From NCBI GenBank assembly GCA_977016875.1, contig CDRNST010000010.1, positions 2,666,001-2,730,000 on the forward strand: a stretch of 64,000 nt of DNA. The letters are read 5' to 3'. The DNA comes from Pavona decussata. Lineage: Eukaryota. Position numbers and translations under genes: made by a program. The notes beneath the pieces are model-generated. The model searched no databases. It was not told the DNA's origin and saw only the letters and a program-made list of their open reading frames with translations. Shown here piece after piece: positions 38,931 through 63,278 of this stretch (the first letter of the stretch is position 1; each line of letters opens with the position of its first letter).

Positions 38931-41900
38931 GTGAGTAAGTAAATGAACTAAACAACAGTCATAACTGAATCTTTACTTCGTAGGCGATTCTTGGGATTTT
39001 ACAGCTCCGTTATTGGCCGACAGCACTTTTTGTGGTGAATTATCCAACAGGCACGTGCGTTTGGATTGAATGTACGCTTCTTTAAGGCCCTCAACCCAAC
39101 AAGAGAAAATTTACTTTTCTTGTTAATATTTATAAAACATTTTGTATTGAGTCGCGAGATATAAGTGCAGATAAAATTTTTAGAAGTGCATCAGCAGTTC
39201 GAAAATCAATAAGACAATTAAGATTTCATCCTTACAAAAACGTTCCGCTGCTAAAATATTCAGAAGAGGGATAAAAAAATACTAGCTGGTCTTACCAACG
39301 GGTTACAGTACCAACATTTCAGCAACAACTGAACAAATAGTCCAGTTTTCGTCTCAATCTATTCCAAATATCTTAGGTGATTATATTCCGAACGAACTAA
39401 TAAACTGGAATTTTTAACAAGAAGCTTTTCATGATCAAATTCTAATCGATCAGCTTGCCATTTTTGTCAGTTTCATATTTTAAGTCGAGAAACACGATTG
39501 TGTTCACAATTTAAGTTACTTGTCTTTTCGTTAACGTGATTTATTCCACTGCTATCACCGCTGTTTCACGACTTTGTGAAGATTCTTTCTAACTAAAGCC
39601 GCTATTCGCGGCAACAAAGGACTTAACACTGACTGGATTATGATGGTAGTTGTCGCCCTCGGCGAATAAATAAGGGAGCGGCCGGGCCGAGACGAATTGC
39701 AAAAATCGGAACAAATCAGCCCCCCTCGGAAACTTGTAACAATTAGATTGTTTCATGGAATCCGTTAACTTCACCAAGGCTATTCAGCGAGCCATAACGA
39801 AGAGGATGGCTTTGCAAAATGATGACAAGATAAATTCCTGTTCCCTGTTTATTGCCGGCTGGGTGTTTATCGGGCGCCAATCGTAGTTTATAGTGGCGAT
39901 CAACATTATATCAGCCTGTTGTACGTTTCCCCGCTAAACAGCTTTTTGTAAGTGGTTCCACTCCATAGCGAATTTAAAGTCTCGTTTCTTAAGAAGAACT
40001 GGATCAAATGATCATAGGTTTCGAGAAGGTGTGAAAATAATACGATTGGAAACATCCAAAGTTTTGACATGTGGATATAAAACATTAAACAGTCAAGGCG
40101 CAACAAAGTTGAAAGTACCCACATTTCTACAAAGAAAAGATCACTTTTTGTCTCAATCGATCAAATCCAGATATCTGAGGCGATTTCATTAATTTCTTCC
40201 GAACAAACTAATAAACCATAATTTAACAGGAATAAAATCATGAAACTTCGGAAATTCTAATCGATCAGCTTAGCATTTATGTAAATTTCAATAACGTAAA
40301 GAAACACGTTTGTATTTGCAAGTTTTGTCTTTTCGTTAACGTCATTTATTTCATTAGTGCTATCACTGTTGTTTCACAAATGTTGTTACATGACTTTGTG
40401 AAGTTCAGTTTCTGTCGAAGGATCTTATCATACGCAAAGTGAACACCCAAAAATTTTTACTGCTTTTTCTTAACTTAAGTTCCTCTAATTACATCTTTGT
40501 GTACAATTGTGGGGGTTGACTTTAACCTAAATAAGTATTTTCGTCTTTTCACAGTTGATACGTAAGACCACAGCATGCTCCAAATTCATCGGTGATATCG
40601 GTGAATTCGCTTGAATTGGTTACTCGTTTAGAGTTGGTAAAAGCGAAGCTTACTTTTGAATCCAGTCCATTGAGTATATCAGTTCAGTCAGCACAGCCGA
40701 GCGTGCTAATCTATATCCTAGTCACGTTTGCGTGAAGGGAGGGAACTAGTCAGAAACTTTCAAGTAAGTGTTTATTTATAATATTGTTATAGTTTTTTAA
40801 TATAAGTGTGTGTGTTTGATGTGGCCATCATTGTACAGGCACAATTAAAGGATCCAGAATGTGACGCAAACTAATAACGAAATATGCACAATTTTGATGA
40901 AAGTTTGCGATCATAAATATCATCTTCCTGAATCATTTAGTGACATTATATATATAAAAAATTACAATTTTTTCTTCATTGTTCTCTAACTAATCAGTTT
41001 ATTCGAGGAAGGCCGGACTACAAAAACAAAAGCAGCTCCTGTAGTGTCCTTTGCCCACAAGGGTTGCGGTCGGGCTGTGAAGGCCTTTATTTCTCAGGCG
41101 TTAGAAAGAAAGCATAGAACGTTTATTCGAAGTCATCAGTGACACTGGATAATCAGTTGACCTCGGTCATTTCAGTACTCTGCTAGTAACTAACAATTGC
41201 TTACTGAGAAATTTGAAATTGATGTTGTTTTTGAAAGGTATTAAATTTTGTGTTCTACTGAAGCGAATCCGAATCGACTGCTGCGTTTGGCACTACCAAC
41301 TGCTGTTTAAACGGTACACCAGGGGGCCTAACTTGCATTTGCCCGCTGGATGACTGCTAAAGAAAACTGGCCGTTAAATTATTTATTTCCCTAAGGTTAA
41401 ACTCTTTTTTTCTGAAACGATTCGTTAGACCATAAAGAAAGGAGTGGAGACCTTTTGATAATTTGCAAGAAGCGGAAACTAATTTTAAAAAAATATATGC
41501 ACCTAATTGCTACAGCGGCGTCACAGAAAACTGATAACCGAAAAAAAGCCTGAAATACGCATTATAGCTTGCAGTTCTAAATGGCGTCACGCGTAATAAA
41601 GATAAAATGAAACTGGTTAACCCGTATTTTGAAGTGTTTCGTGTTGTTCGTTACAGTAGGAAACGCCACTCTCCTTTTCAGAAAGCGCTATCAGAGCAAG
41701 GACCACTAGTTAAAAACATCATTCTTGAAGGACAGCTGGTTACCGTCTCCAAATCAATACTCAACTGTTTGAACACTGTGCGGCTAGGCAAGTAAAACGT
41801 GTACCTTACATAAATTATTAGTCTCTTAACTTTTTGTTTCGTGACTTTTCAAGTTTAAGTATTGTTATCTAACCTCGAATGTTACTTAGATCGTTTGTGC

Positions 41901-43403
41901 CCATAGCGTCACAAAAAGACCTCTTATACTATCTTCGTATGTTTATAATATGCCAGTTATACTGTAAACGCCATTTTTCATGAACAGTTTGCACGCTAAT
42001 TATTTATTTTGCTAATTACAAGTTCTCATCAGTAGAGAAGCGATCAAAGTTGAATATTTCTATATTCGCCCGTCGTAAATTTTCATAGTATGTTTTAATA
42101 GGCATAAAGGATTTAGAACCTGCAAGGAATACTATTCTGGTCACTGAGAGATCGACTCTTTTAAAGTTAGGATCATGTGCAGATATTGGCATCTTGATAA
42201 ATTATGGGTTTCTTGATATGCATGTAAGCTAAAGCTGTGATGACATTATCCTGCATCTTTTCTAAAGACTTCTTCCTTGTGTTTGTTTCTTCCTTTTTTC
42301 ACATCTGTGCTTATTGTTAAACCGTCAATCAGACTGTAAAACGAGCTCCACTAATATCTGACCTGCTGACGCCACAACTGTATGAACTAAGATTATCATC
42401 CCTACTAACTGAGTTGTAGCGCTACAAAAATACACTCGGCTCGTCTTCTTTCAATTCAAACATTGATGTCAGCTTGTTTTTCGACGTCTACACTTGATGA
42501 ATAAAAATTTCATTTTTTTTGTGGCTAGATACTGCTACTTGCTGAACAGTAGCCAACTTTGAAGGGCCGACAAATTCGATGAGATCGATAAACATCCCAC
42601 AGTTTTCAACCAACTTCTCAAAACAACAGTTCGAGAAATCGATAAACAACCAGCAAGTTTCAGGCCAAAATTTAAACCTTTATTTCTGACGGGCTGTTTA
42701 TATGAAAGCAATCAATGTTTATAGCGGCGATCAATATTATATTCGTTTGTCGCTCTTTTGGGCTCTTACTTTTTTGTTAGTGGTTTTATTAAGCCCAGTT
42801 CACACTTGTGAAATAACGACATAAGGGCGAAGTCACGCAAATGCGAAATAACAATTTGTGCATCAAGTTAAACAACATATCGTAATGACACAGCAACATA
42901 ATGACATGAGCATAACAGCATAAAGAAAAAACTGATCTTTTCTTTATTTCGACAGTGTGAACCAAGCTTACATAGCGAATTTAAACTTCCTTGTTTCTTC
43001 AAGAACTGGATCAAATGATCATTTGAATCGAAAAGGTGTGAAATTTTTCGATTCCAAACATCCAAAGTTTAAACATGTGGATTATAGGCATTAAACAGCA
43101 AAGGCGCAACATGTAAAATATCACCAGGATAGAACCACCTAACCTTGTCTCTCTTCGAGATGTGCCTGACATAAGAATTTTTGCATCAAAGGATTTCACT
43201 TTTTAGTTTATTTCCACAAGTATTTGCAGTAGACACATGTGCGTGTTGCGTACCTATTTTTAAAACATGCGGTAAATGTCCATGTGTACCAAGCAGACCA
43301 AAGTCTTTAAAATTCAGTTCGTTTAATTGTTTTGTTTTTCTTTCATGCAGTTTTTCCGTATGGGCACGGAAGACTCGACGATTAAGGAGTAACGAAGACA
43401 ACT

Positions 43404-46400
43404 ATGAACAGTGGGTGGATAGTAATATTCACGGTGAGTAAGTAAATGAACTAAACAACAGTCATAATTGAATCCCTACCTTATAGTTGATCCTTGGGAT
43501 TTTACAGCTCCGTTATTGGCCGACAGCACTTTTTGGGGTGACTCATTCAACAGGCACATGCGTTTGGATTAAATGTGCGCTTCTTTAAGGTCCTCACGCC
43601 AACAAGAAAAAAATTACTTTTCTTATTAATATTGATAACACATTTTGTCTTGAGTCGTGACATATTAGCGCAGATGGAATTTTTAGAAGTGCATCAGCAG
43701 TTCAAAAATCAATGAGACAAGATTCCATCCTTACAAAAATGTTCAGCTGCTAAAATATTCAGAAGAGGAATACGAAAATACTAGCTGGTTTTACCAACGG
43801 TTTAAAGTGCCCACGTTTCAACAACAAAATATCCAGTTTTCGTCTCAACCTTAAATAAATATCTGAGGTGATAATATTCATACGATCTAATAAACTGGAA
43901 TTTTATCGAGAATAATCTCATAAAGCTATTTATCATCAAATTCTAATTGATCAGCTTGGCATTTTTATCAGTTCATTTTAAGTAGAAAAACATGTTTGCA
44001 ATTTCAATTCAAGTAACTTGTTTTTCTTTAACGTAATTTCTTTCAGTGCTATCTGCACTGTTGATTCAAGAGTGCTGTTTCATGACTTTGTGATTCCTAA
44101 CTAATGCCGCTATTCGTGGCCATGAAGGGTTTGAAACTGTCATTATATTGATCATTATGATTGTTGCTGCCCTCGGCGAGAAATTTAGGGAGCGGACTTG
44201 GAAGAATTGCGATAATCGAAAAACTTGTAACGATTAGATTGTTCCATGGACTCAATAAACTTCAAAAAGGCTATTGAACGAGCCATAACGTTGGGTGGAT
44301 GGGATGAAAATGGATGCCAAGAAAAACTTTCTGTTACCTTTAACCTTTCCATTTTCTATTGACAGACCTGTACCAGTCTAATGGTCATGCTCTCTGGTAA
44401 GTCAATGCTATTTACTTATTTACTGGTCTGCAAGGTTTGGAGATAGCTGGTTACGTTGGGGCAGGGAGGGATCCAGCTAGAAATTTCAGTGTTCATGAAT
44501 TTCGCTAGTACTGGGCGTATAATCTGTCGTGAAACAAGATGACATCATAACTTCTTCGTGTTCNNNNNNNNNNNNNNNNNNNNNNNNNNNNNNNNNNNNN
44601 NNNNNNNNNNNNNNNNNNNNNNNNNNNNNNNNNNNNNNNNNNNNNNNNNNNNNNNNNNNNNNNNNNNNNNNNNNNNNNNNNNNNNNNNNNNNNNNNNNNN
44701 NNNNNNNNNNNNNNNNNNNNNTGTCTCCTTCTTTACAAATTCGTTTGATGAATTCAATAGGAGGAACACTTCAAAGCTCTATAACCAACAAACAATTAAA
44801 CATTCAAAGTTCCAAGTGCTACCTTTGACTGGACACTTTGTCCGCTGATCCTAGAGTATACGTTTCTATTTAGATCCGGGGTATGACAGGAAATATGGAT
44901 ACACTTCACATGAATGTGACCTTATCAGATTTATGGGAAGATGAAATAAAACTTCCTAGATTTGTGGGCGGATACAGTATGTCATGAGCGAGTCCTGGGA
45001 CTGTCAAAGTGATATATACTAATTAATCCCAAACAAGAAGTTTAAACCTGGGCCCAGCAATATTATTTTGTTGGCGTATGGTGGAGGATCAGATGAAACA
45101 GTGGCAGATATGGAGCCGTTTTGTCATTTATGAAGTTAAAAGAAGATAAAACCGGGGAAAAATCTTTGCAAAATGTTACACAGTTTGATCTCCTTACGCG
45201 AAAGGTATTCAATCAAAACTTAATGGGGGTGGGGTGGGGGCAATTGTTTTAAAATGGATCTCGATCCACTTCAATTTTGTTCATAACTTCTAAATAACAA
45301 ATACAACAAATCTCATTTACCAAGTTGAATTGACTATTTTTTGCCTTTTTGTCTGCAATTACTTTTGATCTTGCAGCGGGTAATTATTTGAAACTAGCTA
45401 ATGGAAACTTCAAAGGAGAAGGAAGAGTGGAAATTTTCTACAATGGCACCTGGGGAACTATTTGTGACGACAACTGGGATATGAAAGACGCGCATGTCGT
45501 TTGTTATGAACTTGGGTTCAGTAAGGCCCTTAGTGCTCCAACAAACGCCCGGTTTGGTGCAGGAAGTGGCCCCATATGGCTGGATGACGTGCAGTGCATG
45601 GGCGCTGAAAGTTCCTTGATGAATTGCCGGCACAATGGATGGAAAGTTCACAATTGTGGCCACCATGAAGATGCATCAGTGATCTGCTTAAGGAATTTAA
45701 GTATGGCAGTTATATTTTTGTACCCAAAAGAAAATTGTTTTGAAATAATTACATGCAAGAGAGTAATGTTTTGTTATTGTAATATCTGATCAAGGAAAAA
45801 GAATTGGATGAAATGCTGATCACATTCTAGAATCATATCTAATCCTTTAATTTAGTAAAAAGTGCGGGAAGTGAACGAAATGAATTGCCTACTGGCGTTG
45901 AACAGAAATGCGTGGACTGAAATCACATATGCAATTTAAGATAGCAGTGTAACCGCTTATGAACACAAGGTCGACAATCATAGTAACTGAATAGTTAGCA
46001 AGCGGTTTGACCAGTTAACCAGGGCAAATACCATGCAATAACAAGTTAAATTAATTACACTAGAATCCATGCTCCATCAAAGAACTTTGGTTCAAAATAG
46101 CTAAAACGGGAACTTAATATGCGTATCTTTCCAATGAAAGAAGGAAAAAATAATTCGAAGCAGTAGGATTGCTGAAAAATAAATTGAAAAGACACGTTTA
46201 CATATTTACTATTTAAGTTCCTTTTTCGAAAAAAATGATGAAAATTTCCATAGATTCGTAGAGTTAAACGGCGGGAGTTTACACATTAACAGGAATCCTG
46301 CACAAGATTGACTGTTTAAGAGGGTGTCCGCGTTGGAACGGATAAGGCAAATTTCGGCTTTTCACCGATTTCGCTGATTTTTTCTATGAACATCAATCTT

Positions 46401-49400
46401 TATATCCCATAAACCAATATCACATTTACTGAGCTCAATACGATTTTTTTCGTTGTTGGCGAGACGGTTTACAAGGTGACCTCAAAACCACCCAATTTAC
46501 TTTTTGGGAATCTACAATTTAGCTATACATTGTTGGTGCTGTCAAAACGCCATTCCTTGCTCAAAAACCTTGAATATTTTACACATTGACTGGAGTTCCA
46601 TTTATCAATAAGAATATAAATGTTTAACTTTTGGTTTCTGTGAAATTTTGACTGAGTTACAGTTTTTTCAAAATACCTCCTCCTAAACTTCAGAATACAT
46701 TAAACATGACATACATGTAGTTAAAGCCTATATGCACAAAAGTGGAACCTGACTTAGGGTCAAGTCTATTTTAACTCAAAAGCACTAACACCAATCTACT
46801 AATGTATGGAATAAAATTTGTGGGCACTCTTCGCTGCGTGCCGTACAGAGCTCCGCGATTTCCCTAATATTCACGGATTTCAATCGAAACTAAACATAAA
46901 GCCGTCAGACCGATAGAAATCGAACTCTTTGTAACCCGTCTCGCCAACAACGAAAAAAATCGTATTGGGCTCATTAACTGTGATATTTGCTTATAGGATA
47001 TAATGATTGAGGTTCATAAAAGAAATCAGGAAAATCGGTGAAAAGCCGAAATTTGCCTTATCCGTTCTCACGCAGACAGCCTCTTAACACTTGCAATTTT
47101 TGCAATTCCTGTTCCTGTTGCAGTTTTTTCCTTGGATTCTTATAACTGGCCATAATCTTGCTTGGTACTTCCTTGAAGTAATGTCATTGTAATCTTGTGT
47201 TTTAGAGGACAAAGTCCTTGGCCACTGGTTCTTGGATGGGCGAGACCAGAACATAAGGTTGGTCATGTAATTTGTCGATTTTTATAAGGGTGTTTCATAT
47301 CAAAGCTCTTAGGAATTGTATTCAACCGGTATTGTTGGGTTGGTTGTCCGCCATTAACATTTCCTTGGAAGGCAGCTGACTGTTTCTCAGTGTGCACGTT
47401 CGGTAAACCAGGTACGCCAATGAATGTCACAAGCGAGGGCTTGGTGGGGGAAGGGGGGGGGGGGGGGTGTTGGTGGTGGTGATTTGGTATAGAGTAACTA
47501 AATATATGTTCGTTTTCAAAAATTGGCAGTTAAATCCAGTTTAATGTGCTGTATTATTGTTAGATATCTTACGAAAAAAATCCCAATTCCTGATCAGCAG
47601 TTCAAGTTCAAACCATTTAAAGGTTGTCGGTTGACCCAGGGGGAGATATTGGGGACAATGAAAAACTCGAAACGGACGGGAAAAAAAGTTGGGAGGAAAA
47701 GTAAGAACGCCTGGGGACAGATTTTTTATAAACAAATTCCAATAGGCCGAGCAAATACTGGCTCTTGATTGGGCGGAAAAACTTTTGTATTTTTCTGCCA
47801 AATTGGCGAGCAACAAAAGGCCAAAGACCAGCACAAAGAACAACAAGAAAGCTAGTTTGCTTGCCATGTTTGCTATGCCCGTTCAACGAGAATTAAACTG
47901 AAGGGGAAAATCTCCGTCTCAAAGGCCAATATGTCAGAAAAATTATTCGCAATGGCTGAAGAAAAAGCGATGGAAAATACTGTGGAATTTTTAAAAACGT
48001 GTTCTAACAGTAGCGTTTTTTGAGAGGTTCCGAGTTTCCTGATTCGCCGATCAACAATCAAGGGATGCCGGAAAAAAATGTCAGCACTTTAAATCTTGCA
48101 AATGTTTTTTGATGGAAACTTTCCAAGACGGAGACGGGGAATTTCCCTTCAGTTCAATTCTCGTCGAACGGCGAGCAAACTCGCCATCTTGTTGTTCTTC
48201 GTGTTACAGCACACCAAATTGGTTTGTAGCCTTTGCTGCTTCGATTGGGCAGAAAGCTGAAAACAAAACTATTTTAGTCATCCCATGTATTTGATAGATA
48301 GATGAGAAAAATTGGATAACTGTGGGTTGAAACTAAAATCTCGATATTTGGTTGGGCTTTATATCTACAAATTTACATGAAAAGCTATCACTATAATTAA
48401 CTATGTAATGAATTATGGCTCTGTGTTTTCTCGTTACATACAAAGACAAGTATTAACAATTTTTTCCTTGCTTTTTTTAGTTTCAGTGGGTTGCCGCAGT
48501 TTATCGAAGGAAGGTGTCCTGGCAGTAAAGCTCCCATTTTCAACCAATCAAATTTCTTCGCCTCTGCCCCTAAAGTGAATTTCAATGGTTCCAGTTTCAC
48601 GATCTCCTGCTGGATAAAACAAACGAAATACAGACAGATGGGGGTGATTTATGGAGACTGGCATTACCCTCGCGGGCAGTTTCTGCTTAGCGCTGCCAAT
48701 CAAAGTATTGTATTCTATCGTCACAGCATCGTAAACAACGACTGGTGGTCGTTGCAAAGTACCAACCTTTCTTTGATTGACTGGACACATGTTGTGGTCA
48801 CGTGGCATCACGTCACTCGGAATGTGGCAATCTATGCTAACGGTAAAGAAGTAGGCAGGAGGATGTATTCTCCAAAGGAAACATTCTACGGACCCACGGG
48901 GAAGCCTTTCATGATTGGTAATGACGGCCTTACACTTGACCACCAGTTCTACGGATCAGTGATGGATCTTTACGTATTTCACGAGGCGTTATTGTTGGAT
49001 GAAATCAACGTGATAAGAGGTGTGAGGTTTATGGCATTTCCTAGTGATAAATACTGAACATTTTCAAATTTAAAAGAAAAATGTTAACTTGCAGGGCTGT
49101 TTCATTAAAAAAATTCCTTTTCTGCATGGAAAGACAGTATTAGACATTTCAAATCCACGCTTATGAATGGTCTGGCGACGCGGTGAATCTCCTTTCATTT
49201 CATACTTTTGCCCCATTTACGGAATAATAAAACTTTTGAAGACTTAATACAACACTTCCTTTTGGTATGAGTGGAATTGGCTGAATTTTCTTTAATACCA
49301 CCTAAATTATTAGTTTTGATTGATTGATAGCTTTGGATTCTTGTAATAAAGCTATAAGCGCTATAATCTTTTGGTACCGTGTGACTGTCATACCTAATCG

Positions 49401-52400
49401 TACCTTTTTGGCTCGCCGTGGGTATTTTGGCTTGACGGAGGGCGATAAGCTATTTACAGTACCCAAATCCAGACCAAATCCTGGTGATATTTTTAGAGTT
49501 TACATTAATAAAATCTGCCAGGCGACCTTCGTGTGGCCCACAAAGAGAATAATACGGCGGAGTCAACAAACGACGCAAAAAGTGATGAATGTAGCATCCT
49601 ACATTGACAACAATGATAAAATTGCGATTTAACAAACGAATAAAGACGATTGAACAAATATCCTTGAATGGATCTTTTTTAGGTGTTCCAGTGATCGATA
49701 GCCAAGGTAATGTCAATGAAGTTGAAGGAGGAGCCATTGCAGTGAAATGGCAGCCTCTCTTGGAAGACGTCTGTCAAGTCGAGCAGCACAAAGTCTACTA
49801 CAGAGAAATCTTTTCACAGGCAAACAAAGGCAAATGGAGCTCGGTTACTGTTAATAGAAATGCGACAAGCTACATCCTGCACCTTCACTGTTGGAAAGAA
49901 TATGAAATAGCGGTTACGTCTCTAAATTCAAATGGAGAGAGTTCGATCAATGACAGAGAGGTGTGGAAATTCAGAACACTAGGAGGTAATTTATGATGGT
50001 TCTTTTAACATCAGTTCCTGTCAAATTAAAGGTTCCCTTGAAATGAAAGAAAATAATACTGTCTAACAATGATGTCAGTTCAGTCAAGGTAACTGAAGTT
50101 CATGTAACAAGCAGTGCGGAAATTAACTTAAAAGGCATTAGATAATAGTTAGACTCAATAGTTCTCTGGTCACCATATACTAGCCTAAAATACAGACTTA
50201 CTTTTGGCGGGAGAACTGGTATATTCTATTCTCCAGCTAGCATCTTGACTTGGAGAAATCATGTGAATTGATTCGAGTTTACCAAAGGAACACCATCTGC
50301 CATTAAATAAGCTCATTTCCGATAGACTTATCTGAGAGGGCACACAAGTCCGCTAAAAGCTATTCGTTGATACAAACCAAGAATAACTCTTCGGCTTATT
50401 GTGAAGTAGAACTATACTACTAGACGCATTTAGCAACAGCTGATATTTTTGGTTCCAGGAGATAACTGCTGTGTTGAAGCTAATTTTCAAAGTCAATCAG
50501 GATGGGTAAATTGCTCCCTGGGAAGATACCTGAATGGAGTCTGGAAAAACTTGTCTGGAAAAAGTGATGGCATGGACCATGTCACAAAAGGGAGATGCTG
50601 CACACCTCCACAGGAATACCAAGATGAAACACTTGTTTGTCAAACAGCAGACTGGAAAACTCCTCTAAGCAGGTCAGTAAAGTTAGTGACTTTAAATTGG
50701 TCTTAAGTATTGAAGAAAGTTCTGCTTCTTGCGAGGCTCAATTTGCAAGAACGCCTATGTTGTCGTTAAGGCAGCAAATTATCCCCGAGATAATTTGATT
50801 TTCGAATACTCTTCTCTTGATCTAGCTTTATTGATGCAATGGATCTGTGACGTGGGCTGTTGATTAGAACATCAATGTAATTATTTTCCGTTTTTATCGG
50901 GGTCCGAGTATTTTCTTTGAACTGAACGGTTAAGTTTCTTTGGAAATCAAATTAAAAATCAAGCAACTAACCGCATTTTAAATAGAAGAAAGACCCTCGC
51001 AGTTATTTACGCAACTAACGAGTTGCGAAAAGAAAGCCTGAAAAAATTTAGGTTTGAACTGGTTTCGCACCCATGACCTCTGCGATGCAGATATAGCCGG
51101 CTCTACCAACTAAACTATCAAGCAAACTGGGAGCTGGTCATATTGTGAGTTCGTAATGTAGGCGTGAAGGATGAATGAATGGACATTTATATAGGAAACT
51201 ATTATTTTAACTGCGGGTGAAAGATCAAATTTAGGTTTCATATGTTCATATTCATTTAACCACATTTTGCGCGACTATATTTTTTCTTTCCAAACCTAGC
51301 AACCACATCTGGGCTGTCTGTCCTCACGGATATTTTCTTCAAGGATTTTACCGCTCTGATGATACTGGGACTGGGCTGCATAACATCAAGCAAGCAACAT
51401 GCTGCAGGCCTAGAAACTTCAAAACCGTTCCCCTGGACTGCTATGATCACAATGTGACGGTTTTAGTTGCTAAAACAGGCTGGAGTAAATGTCAAGACTG
51501 GTCCTATCTAGCCGGTGTATATAAGGGAGTCTGTGACAAGTTTCACTGTATTGAAACTTTCAGATGCTGTAGGATGCCTCCCTCAGGTATCTGTGCACTG
51601 TATACACTGTTGTGCCAATTTACAAACATGAATCCACGCTCTATCTTAAATTTCTCTAAGTTCCTATTTCAATAAGATTGCGTATAAATAATCTGAATTA
51701 TACATATAAACTCCAAAGTGTACGGATCATAAAGTCTTGCTATTTTGGGCAGAATTTCTTTGATCCAGCGTTTCTAGACTGGATCAGAAGTTGAGACAAG
51801 GGATCAGGAGCCCCCCTTTAATGAGTGTAGGACATTTTTAGATGCACCTAAGCTAAAGCCAAGATTAACTCACTATAGTACAAACATTACGCAAGGACAC
51901 ATGATAATGACCCCAACTAACGTTTTTGTACCTGTTGCTGCATTTTTAGAGATGATTGTCCTTGGCCACTGGAAGCTAGATGGCAGCGATCAGGACATAA
52001 GGTTGGTCAATTACTATATATTTGAGCGACCAGTAAAACCTTATAGTTTTTTGTAGGAAAAAAGTTCGTTGAAATTGAACTATATATGTTTCGAACAACA
52101 TAATCCTGTTCAAGGTTGACATGTAAGTCATTTTAGCTAAATTAAGAATAAAAAAAATCGCCAACCGTTGTTTGTCACCATAACTGACTGTTCATACGTC
52201 TCTGAAATACGGATAAAATGGTACTTGGCATCGGATTGGGTTTTGATCATCAACGTTAATAACTGCGAATAGAAAAATACTAATCAATTTCCTGAAGGGA
52301 TTTTTGAAAGAAGGTTACACTTTTTAAATGGAGTACTTTTTTTAAGGTTGTACAGTTACACGTTTATAAGCTTTTTTTTTCCTATGTCAGTTTCAGTGGT

Positions 52401-63278: not shown

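Follow-up and report, generated by a model that had tools for sequence, protein, structure and literature searches.

The receptor tyrosine kinases (RTKs) of the FGFR/PDGFR/VEGFR group (KIT, PDGFRA, FLT3, CSF1R, FGFR3) are type I single-pass proteins with ectodomains of immunoglobulin repeats, a kinase insert between the hinge region and helix E, and tyrosines in the activation loop. In the Tie, Eph, Axl, insulin receptor, and Ros families, membrane-proximal FN3 domains stand between the binding modules and the membrane. Choanoflagellates, sponges, amphioxus, and Hydra have domain-shuffled, lineage-specific RTKs, among them Sweet Tooth of Hydra with its C-type lectin domains. The SRCR scavenger receptors (SR-A and SR-I classes, DMBT1) expose their SRCR domains on membrane proteins with short cytoplasmic tails that contain no enzyme, and pentraxins such as PTX3 and Limulus SAP-like proteins are soluble oligomers, not receptor domains. 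The L-type lectin receptor kinases (LecRK) of plants have a ConA-like lectin fold outside, one membrane span, and a kinase inside, and their clustered, fast-evolving copies are used for pattern recognition. The combination of a conserved tyrosine kinase with taxon-specific ectodomains is a theme of PMC8662651. A survey of cnidarian SRCR proteins, PMC5119243, describes SRCR together with CUB, trypsin, Ig, and other domains; a keyword search of its text and figure legend found no tyrosine kinase named with them. How corals discriminate symbionts, pathogens, and neighbors is an open question, and few signaling-competent surface receptors are known.

The DNA analyzed here, referred to as the window, is a stretch of 64,000 nt from the stony coral Pavona decussata. 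Its main gene encodes, in order, a signal peptide, SRCR, Laminin_G_3, FN3, a Cys-rich module, Laminin_G_3, two FN3 domains, a membrane span, and a split tyrosine kinase. A first-pass annotation of the window had called such an architecture unusual, and this agrees with a literature search in which no paper describing an SRCR-LamG-FN3 RTK was found. In our preferred reading, to which we give a probability of about 0.6, this is an intact type I RTK gene belonging to a family of some two dozen loci, with a lectin-like ectodomain that likely binds a glycan-bearing, possibly non-self, ligand and signals via the kinase. The features are as follows (phases are given at exon start and end).

1910-21957, + strand: upstream copy A, from FN3 a through the last kinase exon, ~81% DNA identity.
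43404-43433, + strand: exon 1, start codon and first 10 signal-peptide codons, phase 0 to 0; RNA joint 43433>44366, GT..AG, run X5.
44366-44396, + strand: exon 2, remaining signal peptide, 31 nt, phase 0 to 1; RNA joints at both ends in one 144-nt contig.
44564-44721, no strand: assembly gap (N run) within intron 2 (44397-45376).
45377-45700, + strand: exon 3, a single SRCR domain containing six cysteines, phase 1 to 1; Pfam SRCR 9.6e-36; RNA joints 44396>45377 and 45700>47206 (X5 and X7).
47206-47257, + strand: exon 4, 52-nt mini-exon that supplies the initial strand of LamG domain 1, phase 1 to 2; RNA joints at both ends (X5 and X7).
48481-49019, + strand: exon 5, bulk of Laminin_G_3 domain 1, phase 2 to 1; Pfam 2.6e-18; RNA joint 47257>48481.
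49683-49985, + strand: exon 6, FN3 a, phase 1 to 1; placed by splice sites and phase.
50459-50672, + strand: exon 7, repeat one of the beta-prism-like, Cys-rich module, phase 1 to 2; no Pfam match, homologous exons in paralogs and other assemblies.
51300-51586, + strand: exon 8, repeats two and three of this Cys-rich module, phase 2 to 1.
51950-52001, + strand: exon 9, 52-nt mini-exon that supplies the initial strand of LamG domain 2, phase 1 to 2; intact in the C51 and C58 copies.
52397-52941, + strand: exon 10, bulk of Laminin_G_3 domain 2, phase 2 to 1; Pfam 1.2e-21.
53376-53675, + strand: exon 11, FN3 b, phase 1 to 1; Pfam fn3 5.7e-08.
54513-54815, + strand: exon 12, FN3 c, with a GC-AG intron after it, phase 1 to 1; Pfam fn3 4.4e-07.
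56031-56181, + strand: exon 13, membrane-spanning segment plus basic juxtamembrane stretch, phase 1 to 2.
56394-56599, + strand: exon 14, N-lobe of the kinase, including GRGAFG and VAVK, phase 2 to 1.
59905-60089, + strand: exon 15, kinase from helix C to the hinge, phase 1 to 0; Pfam PK_Tyr_Ser-Thr 4.2e-08.
60986-61444, + strand: exon 16, putative kinase-insert exon a, phase 0 to 0.
62303-62767, + strand: exon 17, kinase-insert exon b and start of helix E, phase 0 to 0.
63067-63278, + strand: exon 18, catalytic loop, activation loop with two tyrosines, and APE, phase 0 to 2; Pfam PK_Tyr_Ser-Thr 9.7e-27.
Contig C10 2730019-2730059, 2731034-2731130, and 2731916-2732102: three kinase exons past the window, read from the downstream sequence.

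Rebuilt from open frames and splice sites, the whole frame comprises 4983 nt, or 1660 codons, and its sole stop is the terminal one. Domain and structure searches were run exon by exon; the exons were joined into one frame for checking phases and stops. The 18 phase-compatible exons of the first-pass annotation were recovered with exactly its first and last coordinates, 43404 and 63278; these exons are real, but they are not the whole gene, which the window end cuts and which has 21 exons in total. The phase is kept at all 20 junctions, an outcome that unrelated pieces would produce with a chance of ~(1/3)^20. Nineteen introns are GT-AG, and the one after exon 12 is GC-AG, with the same GC donor in three paralogs (copy A, C51, and C58). 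A candidate donor of exon 12 at 54770 was dropped in favor of the GC donor at 54816, since the latter retains the last FN3 strand and is conserved in these three paralogs. Homologs of exon 1 lie upstream of the SRCR exons of paralogs, and exon 2 is conserved at 18 genome places, likewise upstream of SRCR exons. A search for RNA families gave no Rfam match across positions 43000-64000.

The 5′ part of the model is covered by spliced contigs. In the single 144-nt contig from X5, exon 2 is complete (31 nt) and is flanked by 21 nt of exon 1 and 92 nt of exon 3; the exon 3 part shows zero mismatches, and both joints are GT..AG. Since it joins 44396 to 45377, the mRNA spans the assembly gap in frame, from phase 1 into phase 1. 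The SRCR domain is joined to the first LamG domain by spliced contigs from two studies (X5 and X7), and all RNA joints, which were tested across exons 1-5, turned out to be GT..AG at the predicted bases. For exon 5, the acceptor taken in the RNA is that at 48481, which amends the first-pass annotation. X5 and X7 were labeled as RNA by guess, and their cDNA nature is indicated by these very joints. At least the 5′ part of the gene is transcribed.

The RNA joints are shown for exons 1-5 only, which would also agree with two genes whose single frame is accidental: an upstream gene whose SRCR/LamG product is secreted, and a distinct kinase gene downstream of it. This arrangement is extremely improbable: no exon is interrupted by a stop, exons 13 and 14 start in phases 1 and 2, respectively, and neither has its own start codon and signal peptide. 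Moreover, in the C51 paralog, exons 3-21 (19 exons) are colinear and open with the same splice sites and with the same lengths as in the window gene, except for exon 16, which is 9 nt shorter and in frame. A divergent relative in another assembly also keeps Cys-rich, LamG, FN3, FN3, and kinase exons in this order. A single RTK gene with the domain order proposed in the first-pass annotation is the reading favored by the Pfam matches, the phases, and the C51 paralog, and the link between ectodomain and kinase, as judged from sequence, rests on the phases, the intact C51 exons, and loci that are colinear in this genome and in two further assemblies.

The locus had also been described as part of a tandem family. 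This is true of the genome, where the family is multi-copy and largely clustered: the kinase exon is present at 24 places, mostly in clusters, and SRCR, Cys-rich, and kinase exons are colinear at 14 loci. The window itself holds only one intact gene and a 5′-truncated, broken copy. The latter, copy A, is without signal-peptide, SRCR, and LamG 1 exons, none of which lies within 20 kb upstream; its FN3 a has an 11-nt deletion, stops interrupt the exons of LamG 2 and FN3 c, and the kinase exons are intact. The absent 5′ exons, the frameshift, and the stops rule it out as a second functional gene. The closest copy, C58, was considered as a haplotype duplicate; this was ruled out because the identity of its SRCR exon is just 80% and the copy carries frameshifts of its own, so that it represents a separate broken locus. 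With copy A and C58 both broken, the window copy might be decaying or non-translated like these neighbors. We regard this as very improbable, given 0 stops or frameshifts in 4983 nt, the intact state of every splice site, and the spliced RNA contig that represents the window copy without a mismatch.

The extracellular part starts with a putative signal peptide, a hydrophobic N-terminus of 20 residues encoded by exons 1-2, and contains 15 NxS/T sites; each of its modules is a phase 1-1 unit. Both Laminin_G_3 domains (PF13385) score above the cut-off of 27.6 bits, with 67.1 and 77.9 bits, and both are preceded by the same 52-nt exon. The model of LamG domain 2 is a beta sandwich (pLDDT 88.7). 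The pentraxin/LamG label of the first-pass annotation is correct as to fold, the best solved structural match of LamG_3 being the pentraxin domain of PTX3 (TM 0.73; 0.64-0.73 and ~20% identity across the pentraxins), but not as to family, since the Pfam Pentaxin scores (14.5 and 18.1 bits) are under the cut-off of 25 and the pentraxin signature HxCxS/TWxS is absent from the sequence. FN3 b and c exceed the Pfam fn3 cut-off of 25 bits, which FN3 a narrowly misses (1.4e-4, 22.5 bits); FN3 a is homologous to both and ~50% identical to FN3 b-type exons of a paralog and of another assembly. No exon gives an Ig-family Pfam match.

The Cys-rich part, also named in the first-pass annotation, is present, yet it proved to be a distinct module of ~165 residues in three repeats that belongs to no Pfam family (E up to 10). 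For exon 8, an alignment of 22 genomic copies shows invariant cysteines, and the model has a pLDDT of 76.8. Compared with predicted structures, the module resembles the N-terminal part, or small lobe, of mollusc aerolysin-like proteins (TM 0.66 over 93 residues) and, to a smaller extent, DERM-bearing clusters (TM ~0.5), to which its language-model features are nearest (similarity 0.96). Foldseek against the PDB found nothing below E 1.9, and a wide structural search gave Z ≤ 2.6. Assignment to dermatopontin (DERM, PF14704) was rejected and stays a resemblance, because there is neither a Pfam match at E 10 nor a match among solved structures. The small lobe (domain I) of biomphalysins and other mollusc aerolysin-like proteins is described as a disulfide-rich, lectin-like beta-prism of three 4-strand motifs (PMC12186885). 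The repeats of the coral module are alike to it and to dermatopontin; mollusc aerolysin-like proteins, however, have a pore-forming domain, and the coral gene is without one.

Exon 13 encodes one hydrophobic stretch of 24 residues followed by a basic stretch, after which the kinase exons continue in frame. The cytoplasmic part is a tyrosine kinase of >600 residues, in which the kinase motifs and APE are all present. The nearest solved chains are FLT3, CSF1R, KIT, and FGFR3 for exon 15 and KIT and PDGFRA for exon 18. By this measure, the kinase core comes closest to the FGFR/PDGFR/VEGFR group, with which the coral gene also shares the type I single-pass topology, the position of the kinase insert, and activation-loop tyrosines, two in number in the coral protein (IYGDIY). 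The differences lie in the ectodomain, where SRCR, LamG_3, beta-prism-like, and FN3 modules take the place of immunoglobulin repeats, and in the long acidic insert encoded by exons 16-17, which, if both exons are used, would reach up to ~300 residues, far longer than in this group. The membrane-proximal FN3 domains recall the Tie, Eph, Axl, insulin receptor, and Ros families, although the coral kinase is closer to the split-kinase group than to theirs; to our knowledge, none of these families has SRCR, Laminin_G_3, or the Cys-rich module. Unlike the SRCR scavenger receptors, with which it shares an extracellular SRCR domain on a membrane protein, the coral gene carries a tyrosine kinase.

The C-terminal tail is almost unchanged in four copies, and YYNVM is invariant in all four. 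This sequence fits both the Grb2-type pYxN and the PI3K-type pYxxM specificities of SH2 domains, which makes it a candidate docking motif. In the comparison of the window gene with the C51 copy, the kinase core has a dN/dS of 0.15 and is under purifying selection. With complete catalytic motifs and a kinase constrained in this way, signaling directly by tyrosine phosphorylation, as the first-pass annotation had it, is a sound expectation. In the same comparison, the ectodomain has a dN/dS of 0.66 (about 0.5-0.7) and the insert one of 0.86. The ectodomain value points to relaxed constraint and is not proof of diversifying selection, and the values >1 of single exons have few substitutions behind each of them.

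The exon content of the copies varies outside the kinase. The number of SRCR exons ranges from 1 to 6, a relative in another assembly (L005) has two FN3 a exons, and the C151 paralog has six FN3 b exons, with SRCR, LamG 1, and Cys-rich exons absent in the part read. As read from these gene copies, the family is shown to diversify via duplication and loss of ectodomain exons, the kinase staying fixed; receptor diversification by exon shuffling is here caught midway in one genome. The domain-shuffled RTKs of other lineages share a conserved kinase and taxon-specific, partly lectin-like ectodomains with the coral gene; in the literature searched, the coral domain combination is not among them, and they differ from the coral family in that here the shuffling is still visible among the paralogs of one genome. 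A search for full-length relatives with the LamG 2 exon against protein representatives yielded only exon-sized coral frames and long bacterial LamG_3 proteins; with this exon-sized query and unspliced frames, a tyrosine-kinase catalytic loop was found in 0 of the 150 best matches.

Binding-type outer modules and about two dozen related copies make this a candidate sensor family. The lectin-like modules would bind an extracellular ligand, likeliest a glycan-bearing one and possibly non-self, such as a microbe, an algal symbiont, or a neighboring colony. Ligand binding would bring two receptors together, and the paired kinases would then phosphorylate each other on the two activation-loop tyrosines. 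The phosphotyrosines could recruit SH2 adaptors, for which YYNVM in the tail is a candidate site. An immune, allorecognition, or symbiont-sensing role, which the first-pass annotation had suggested, is plausible; the circumstantial points for it are the ectodomain dN/dS, the gain and loss of copies, the varying module numbers, and the binding-type folds.

It is also possible, if doubtful, that the gene encodes a genuine RTK with an endogenous ligand, a matrix component or a secreted coral factor, and serves growth, adhesion, or the organization of calcifying tissue rather than the sensing of non-self. The kinase resembles those of growth-factor receptors, FN3, LamG, and SRCR are also common in matrix and adhesion proteins, and the overall ectodomain dN/dS is <1. 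Developmental receptors, however, are mostly single-copy, and a large number of clustered copies, some of them broken, with module numbers that vary, is unusual for them. If the ligands are endogenous, the gene would still represent a new RTK architecture, of use in tracing how the split-kinase group evolved.

To return to a receptor for a glycan-bearing ligand, a broader proposal can be put forward tentatively. The coral may possess an expanded, germline-encoded family of surface receptors in which SRCR, pentraxin-like, and beta-prism recognition is wired directly to a tyrosine kinase, without adaptor receptors, so as to signal the presence of microbes, symbionts, or neighbors, with diversity arising by duplication and loss of phase 1-1 exons. 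Such a family would be an animal counterpart of the plant lectin receptor kinases, by analogy of layout and clustered copies; the latter are Ser/Thr kinases of an unrelated lineage, with no common descent with the coral RTK. The family offers concrete candidates with binding-type folds, a conserved, active-looking kinase, and the candidate docking motif, and these properties make tests of binding, phosphorylation, and expression straightforward.

As to the kinase insert, exon 16 ends in a degenerate copy of the sequence that ends exon 17. Exon 16 is open with AG/GT sites in the window gene, copy A, and C51, and the last 17 residues of exon 17 are identical in the window gene and C51, with one residue differing in copy A.

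The gene that starts at 43404 on the forward strand encodes a complete receptor tyrosine kinase with the ectodomain proposed in the first-pass annotation, and it is transcribed at least in its 5′ part. Exon borders were set by splice consensus and phase, from open frames of this strand. On rebuilding, the 18 exons claimed earlier kept the same end points, the ATG at 43404 and the donor that follows 63278, and the open frames display the claimed order: signal peptide, SRCR, LamG, FN3, Cys-rich module, LamG, FN3, FN3, membrane span and kinase. The phases fail to match unless two mini-exons are included, and three further kinase exons lie past the window end (L004).

Mini-exons and terminal kinase exons
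47206-47257, + strand: mini-exon of 52 nt, first strand of LamG 1
51950-52001, + strand: mini-exon of 52 nt, first strand of LamG 2
G000:C10:2730019-2730059, + strand: kinase exon past the window end (L004)
G000:C10:2731034-2731130, + strand: kinase exon past the window end (L004)
G000:C10:2731916-2732102, + strand: last kinase exon, with the stop at its end (L004)

Together the 21 exons comprise 4983 nt (1660 codons), and the sole stop is terminal. Nineteen introns are GT-AG and one, after exon 12, is GC-AG; its GC donor (54816-54817), which follows the third FN3 exon, is kept in the upstream broken family copy of the window (copy A) and in the paralogues on contigs C51 and C58. The window corresponds to G000:C10:2666001-2730000 in an assembly of 602 Mb, and RNA runs containing parts of it carry a coral label. 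The G+C content of the window (35-42%) and the division of the coding sequence into short exons mark this as a eukaryotic gene, and the closest named relatives of its domains are from Montipora, Oculina, Porites and Nematostella.

Four points, all taken from genomic sequence, support the assignment of kinase and ectodomain to the same gene. No exon is interrupted by a stop. Exons 13 and 14 open in phases 1 and 2, respectively, and have no starts of their own. In the intact C51 paralogue, exons 3-21 are colinear and open with identical splice sites, including the GC donor, and with identical lengths save for a 9-nt shortening of exon 16 that preserves the frame. Finally, among loci of other assemblies, the divergent L034 (45-75% identical) preserves the exon order Cys-rich, LamG, FN3, FN3 and the full set of kinase exons, and L005 preserves it from SRCR through LamG 2.

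RNA joints were examined over 43350-49100 (exons 1-5), a region with one assembly gap.

Assembly gap
44564-44721: N run inside intron 2

A single 144-nt contig of run X5 has the GT..AG joints 43433>44366 and 44396>45377, with zero mismatches across 92 nt of the SRCR exon; since it spans both joints, the exons flanking the gap are joined in frame in RNA. At paralogous loci, too, homologues of exons 1 and 2 precede the SRCR exons. The joints 45700>47206 and 47257>48481 occur in X5 and X7, runs of two different studies. The proposed SRCR-LamG 1 splicing is confirmed by them, and the latter joint fixes the exon 5 acceptor at 48481. One X7 contig at the SRCR exon (45377-45700) links the end of an SRCR exon back to an SRCR exon start with 12 other letters between, as expected of transcripts from paralogues with tandem SRCR exons. 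Intron 3 contains (46315-46920) a dispersed repeat of ~600 nt with inverted ends of ~160-185 nt and >80 matches genome-wide at ~90% identity. The repeat resembles a non-autonomous DNA transposon and accounts for RNA contig depths in the thousands (X1, X2). The exon 1 region recurs at 38874-38957, 4.5 kb ahead of the gene, with 90% identity. This duplicate retains an ATG, a run of ten open codons and a GTGAGT donor; it may serve as an alternative first exon or be what remains of a lost copy.

Pfam matches of the encoded protein
SRCR: 9.6e-36
Laminin_G_3: 2.6e-18 and 1.2e-21
Pentaxin: below threshold only
fn3: 5.7e-08 and 4.4e-07; the third, at 22.5 bits, slightly under the 25-bit cut-off
PK_Tyr_Ser-Thr: 9.7e-27 on exon 18; other kinase exons weaker

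The N-terminus is hydrophobic, and a basic stretch comes after the single membrane span. For LamG 2, a model based on 21 relatives (pLDDT 88.7) has the PTX3 pentraxin domain as its best structural match (TM 0.73, 20% identity), followed by other concanavalin-A-like jelly rolls. The kinase motifs are present (21 residues together with APE), and the activation loop has two tyrosines. For two kinase exons the closest solved chains are KIT, PDGFRA, FLT3, CSF1R and FGFR3, the split-kinase group named FPVR/FGFR in PMC8662651.

The Cys-rich module, encoded by exons 7 and 8, repeats a single Cys-rich motif three times; Pfam finds nothing in it at thresholds up to E 10. The cysteines of exon 8 are invariant across an alignment of 22 genomic copies. 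Structure searches with the model of this module (pLDDT 76.8) found no matching solved structure. The model resembles aerolysin-like proteins of molluscs in their N-terminal part (TM 0.66 over 93 residues), a cnidarian EGF protein (TM 0.65) and dermatopontin-bearing clusters (TM ~0.5), the last being nearest by language-model features. The small lobe of biomphalysin is a lectin-like, disulfide-rich beta-prism of three 4-strand motifs (PMC12186885). A profile search identified stand-alone unnamed proteins of 130-230 residues bearing the module in Oculina, Porites and the snail Lymnaea. Among them are P0171, P0188, P0191, P0196 and P0199, of about 190-230 residues, from Oculina patagonica, Porites lobata, Porites lutea and Lymnaea stagnalis; in all five the module lacks a Pfam family.

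The kinase is under constraint: compared with the intact C51 copy, the kinase core has a dN/dS of 0.15, and the values in the ectodomain and the insert exons are 0.66 and 0.86, respectively. The C-terminal tail has almost no change among four copies, with YYNVM invariant. The two predicted kinase-insert exons (60986-61444 and 62303-62767) are mutual duplicates with 65% DNA identity, both of phase 0-0; the divergent L034 has one exon of this type only. Of the pair, just the second retains a nearly unchanged helix E start, at the end of exon 17, which is identical in the main gene and C51 and differs by one residue in copy A; the corresponding terminal stretch of exon 16 is both degenerate and variable.

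The family is clustered, modular, and both gains and loses copies. The kinase exon 18 region occurs at 24 genomic places at ≥81% DNA identity, among them eight on C151, five on C382, three on C58 and two on C10, and at 14 loci SRCR, Cys-rich and kinase exons agree in order and strand. Tandem SRCR exons number from 1 to 6 per copy, and the FN3 a exon is present twice in L005. One C151 paralogue (G000:C151:114020-138452) has the same signal-peptide and kinase exons as the main gene, but its ectodomain consists of LamG, six FN3 b-type exons in tandem (spacing ~1070 nt) and FN3 c; SRCR, LamG 1 and Cys-rich exons are absent from the part examined, which starts ~1.7 kb past exon 2 of this paralogue. 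All modules of the ectodomain are phase 1-1 units, so their numbers can vary without breaking the frame. As to decay, the C58 copy has one stop and two frameshifts; copy A (1910-21957) has an 11-nt deletion and stops, and no 5′ exons were found within 20 kb upstream of it.

The folds and the family dynamics make this receptor a candidate for non-self recognition, which is a reasonable guess; the ligand may instead be endogenous. In signalling, a ligand would drive dimerisation, the activation loop would be phosphorylated, and SH2 proteins would dock on the C-terminal tail. No description of an SRCR-LamG-FN3 tyrosine kinase was found in the available portions of the literature searched, a set of incomplete coverage that includes PMC5119243, PMC8662651, PMC5094078 and PMC9897584.

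Mobile-element debris occurs in intron 14 (57058-57933), as a weak reverse-transcriptase fragment, and between the two copies of the window (22000-32000), where the minus strand has long open frames of 655, 256 and 551 aa.
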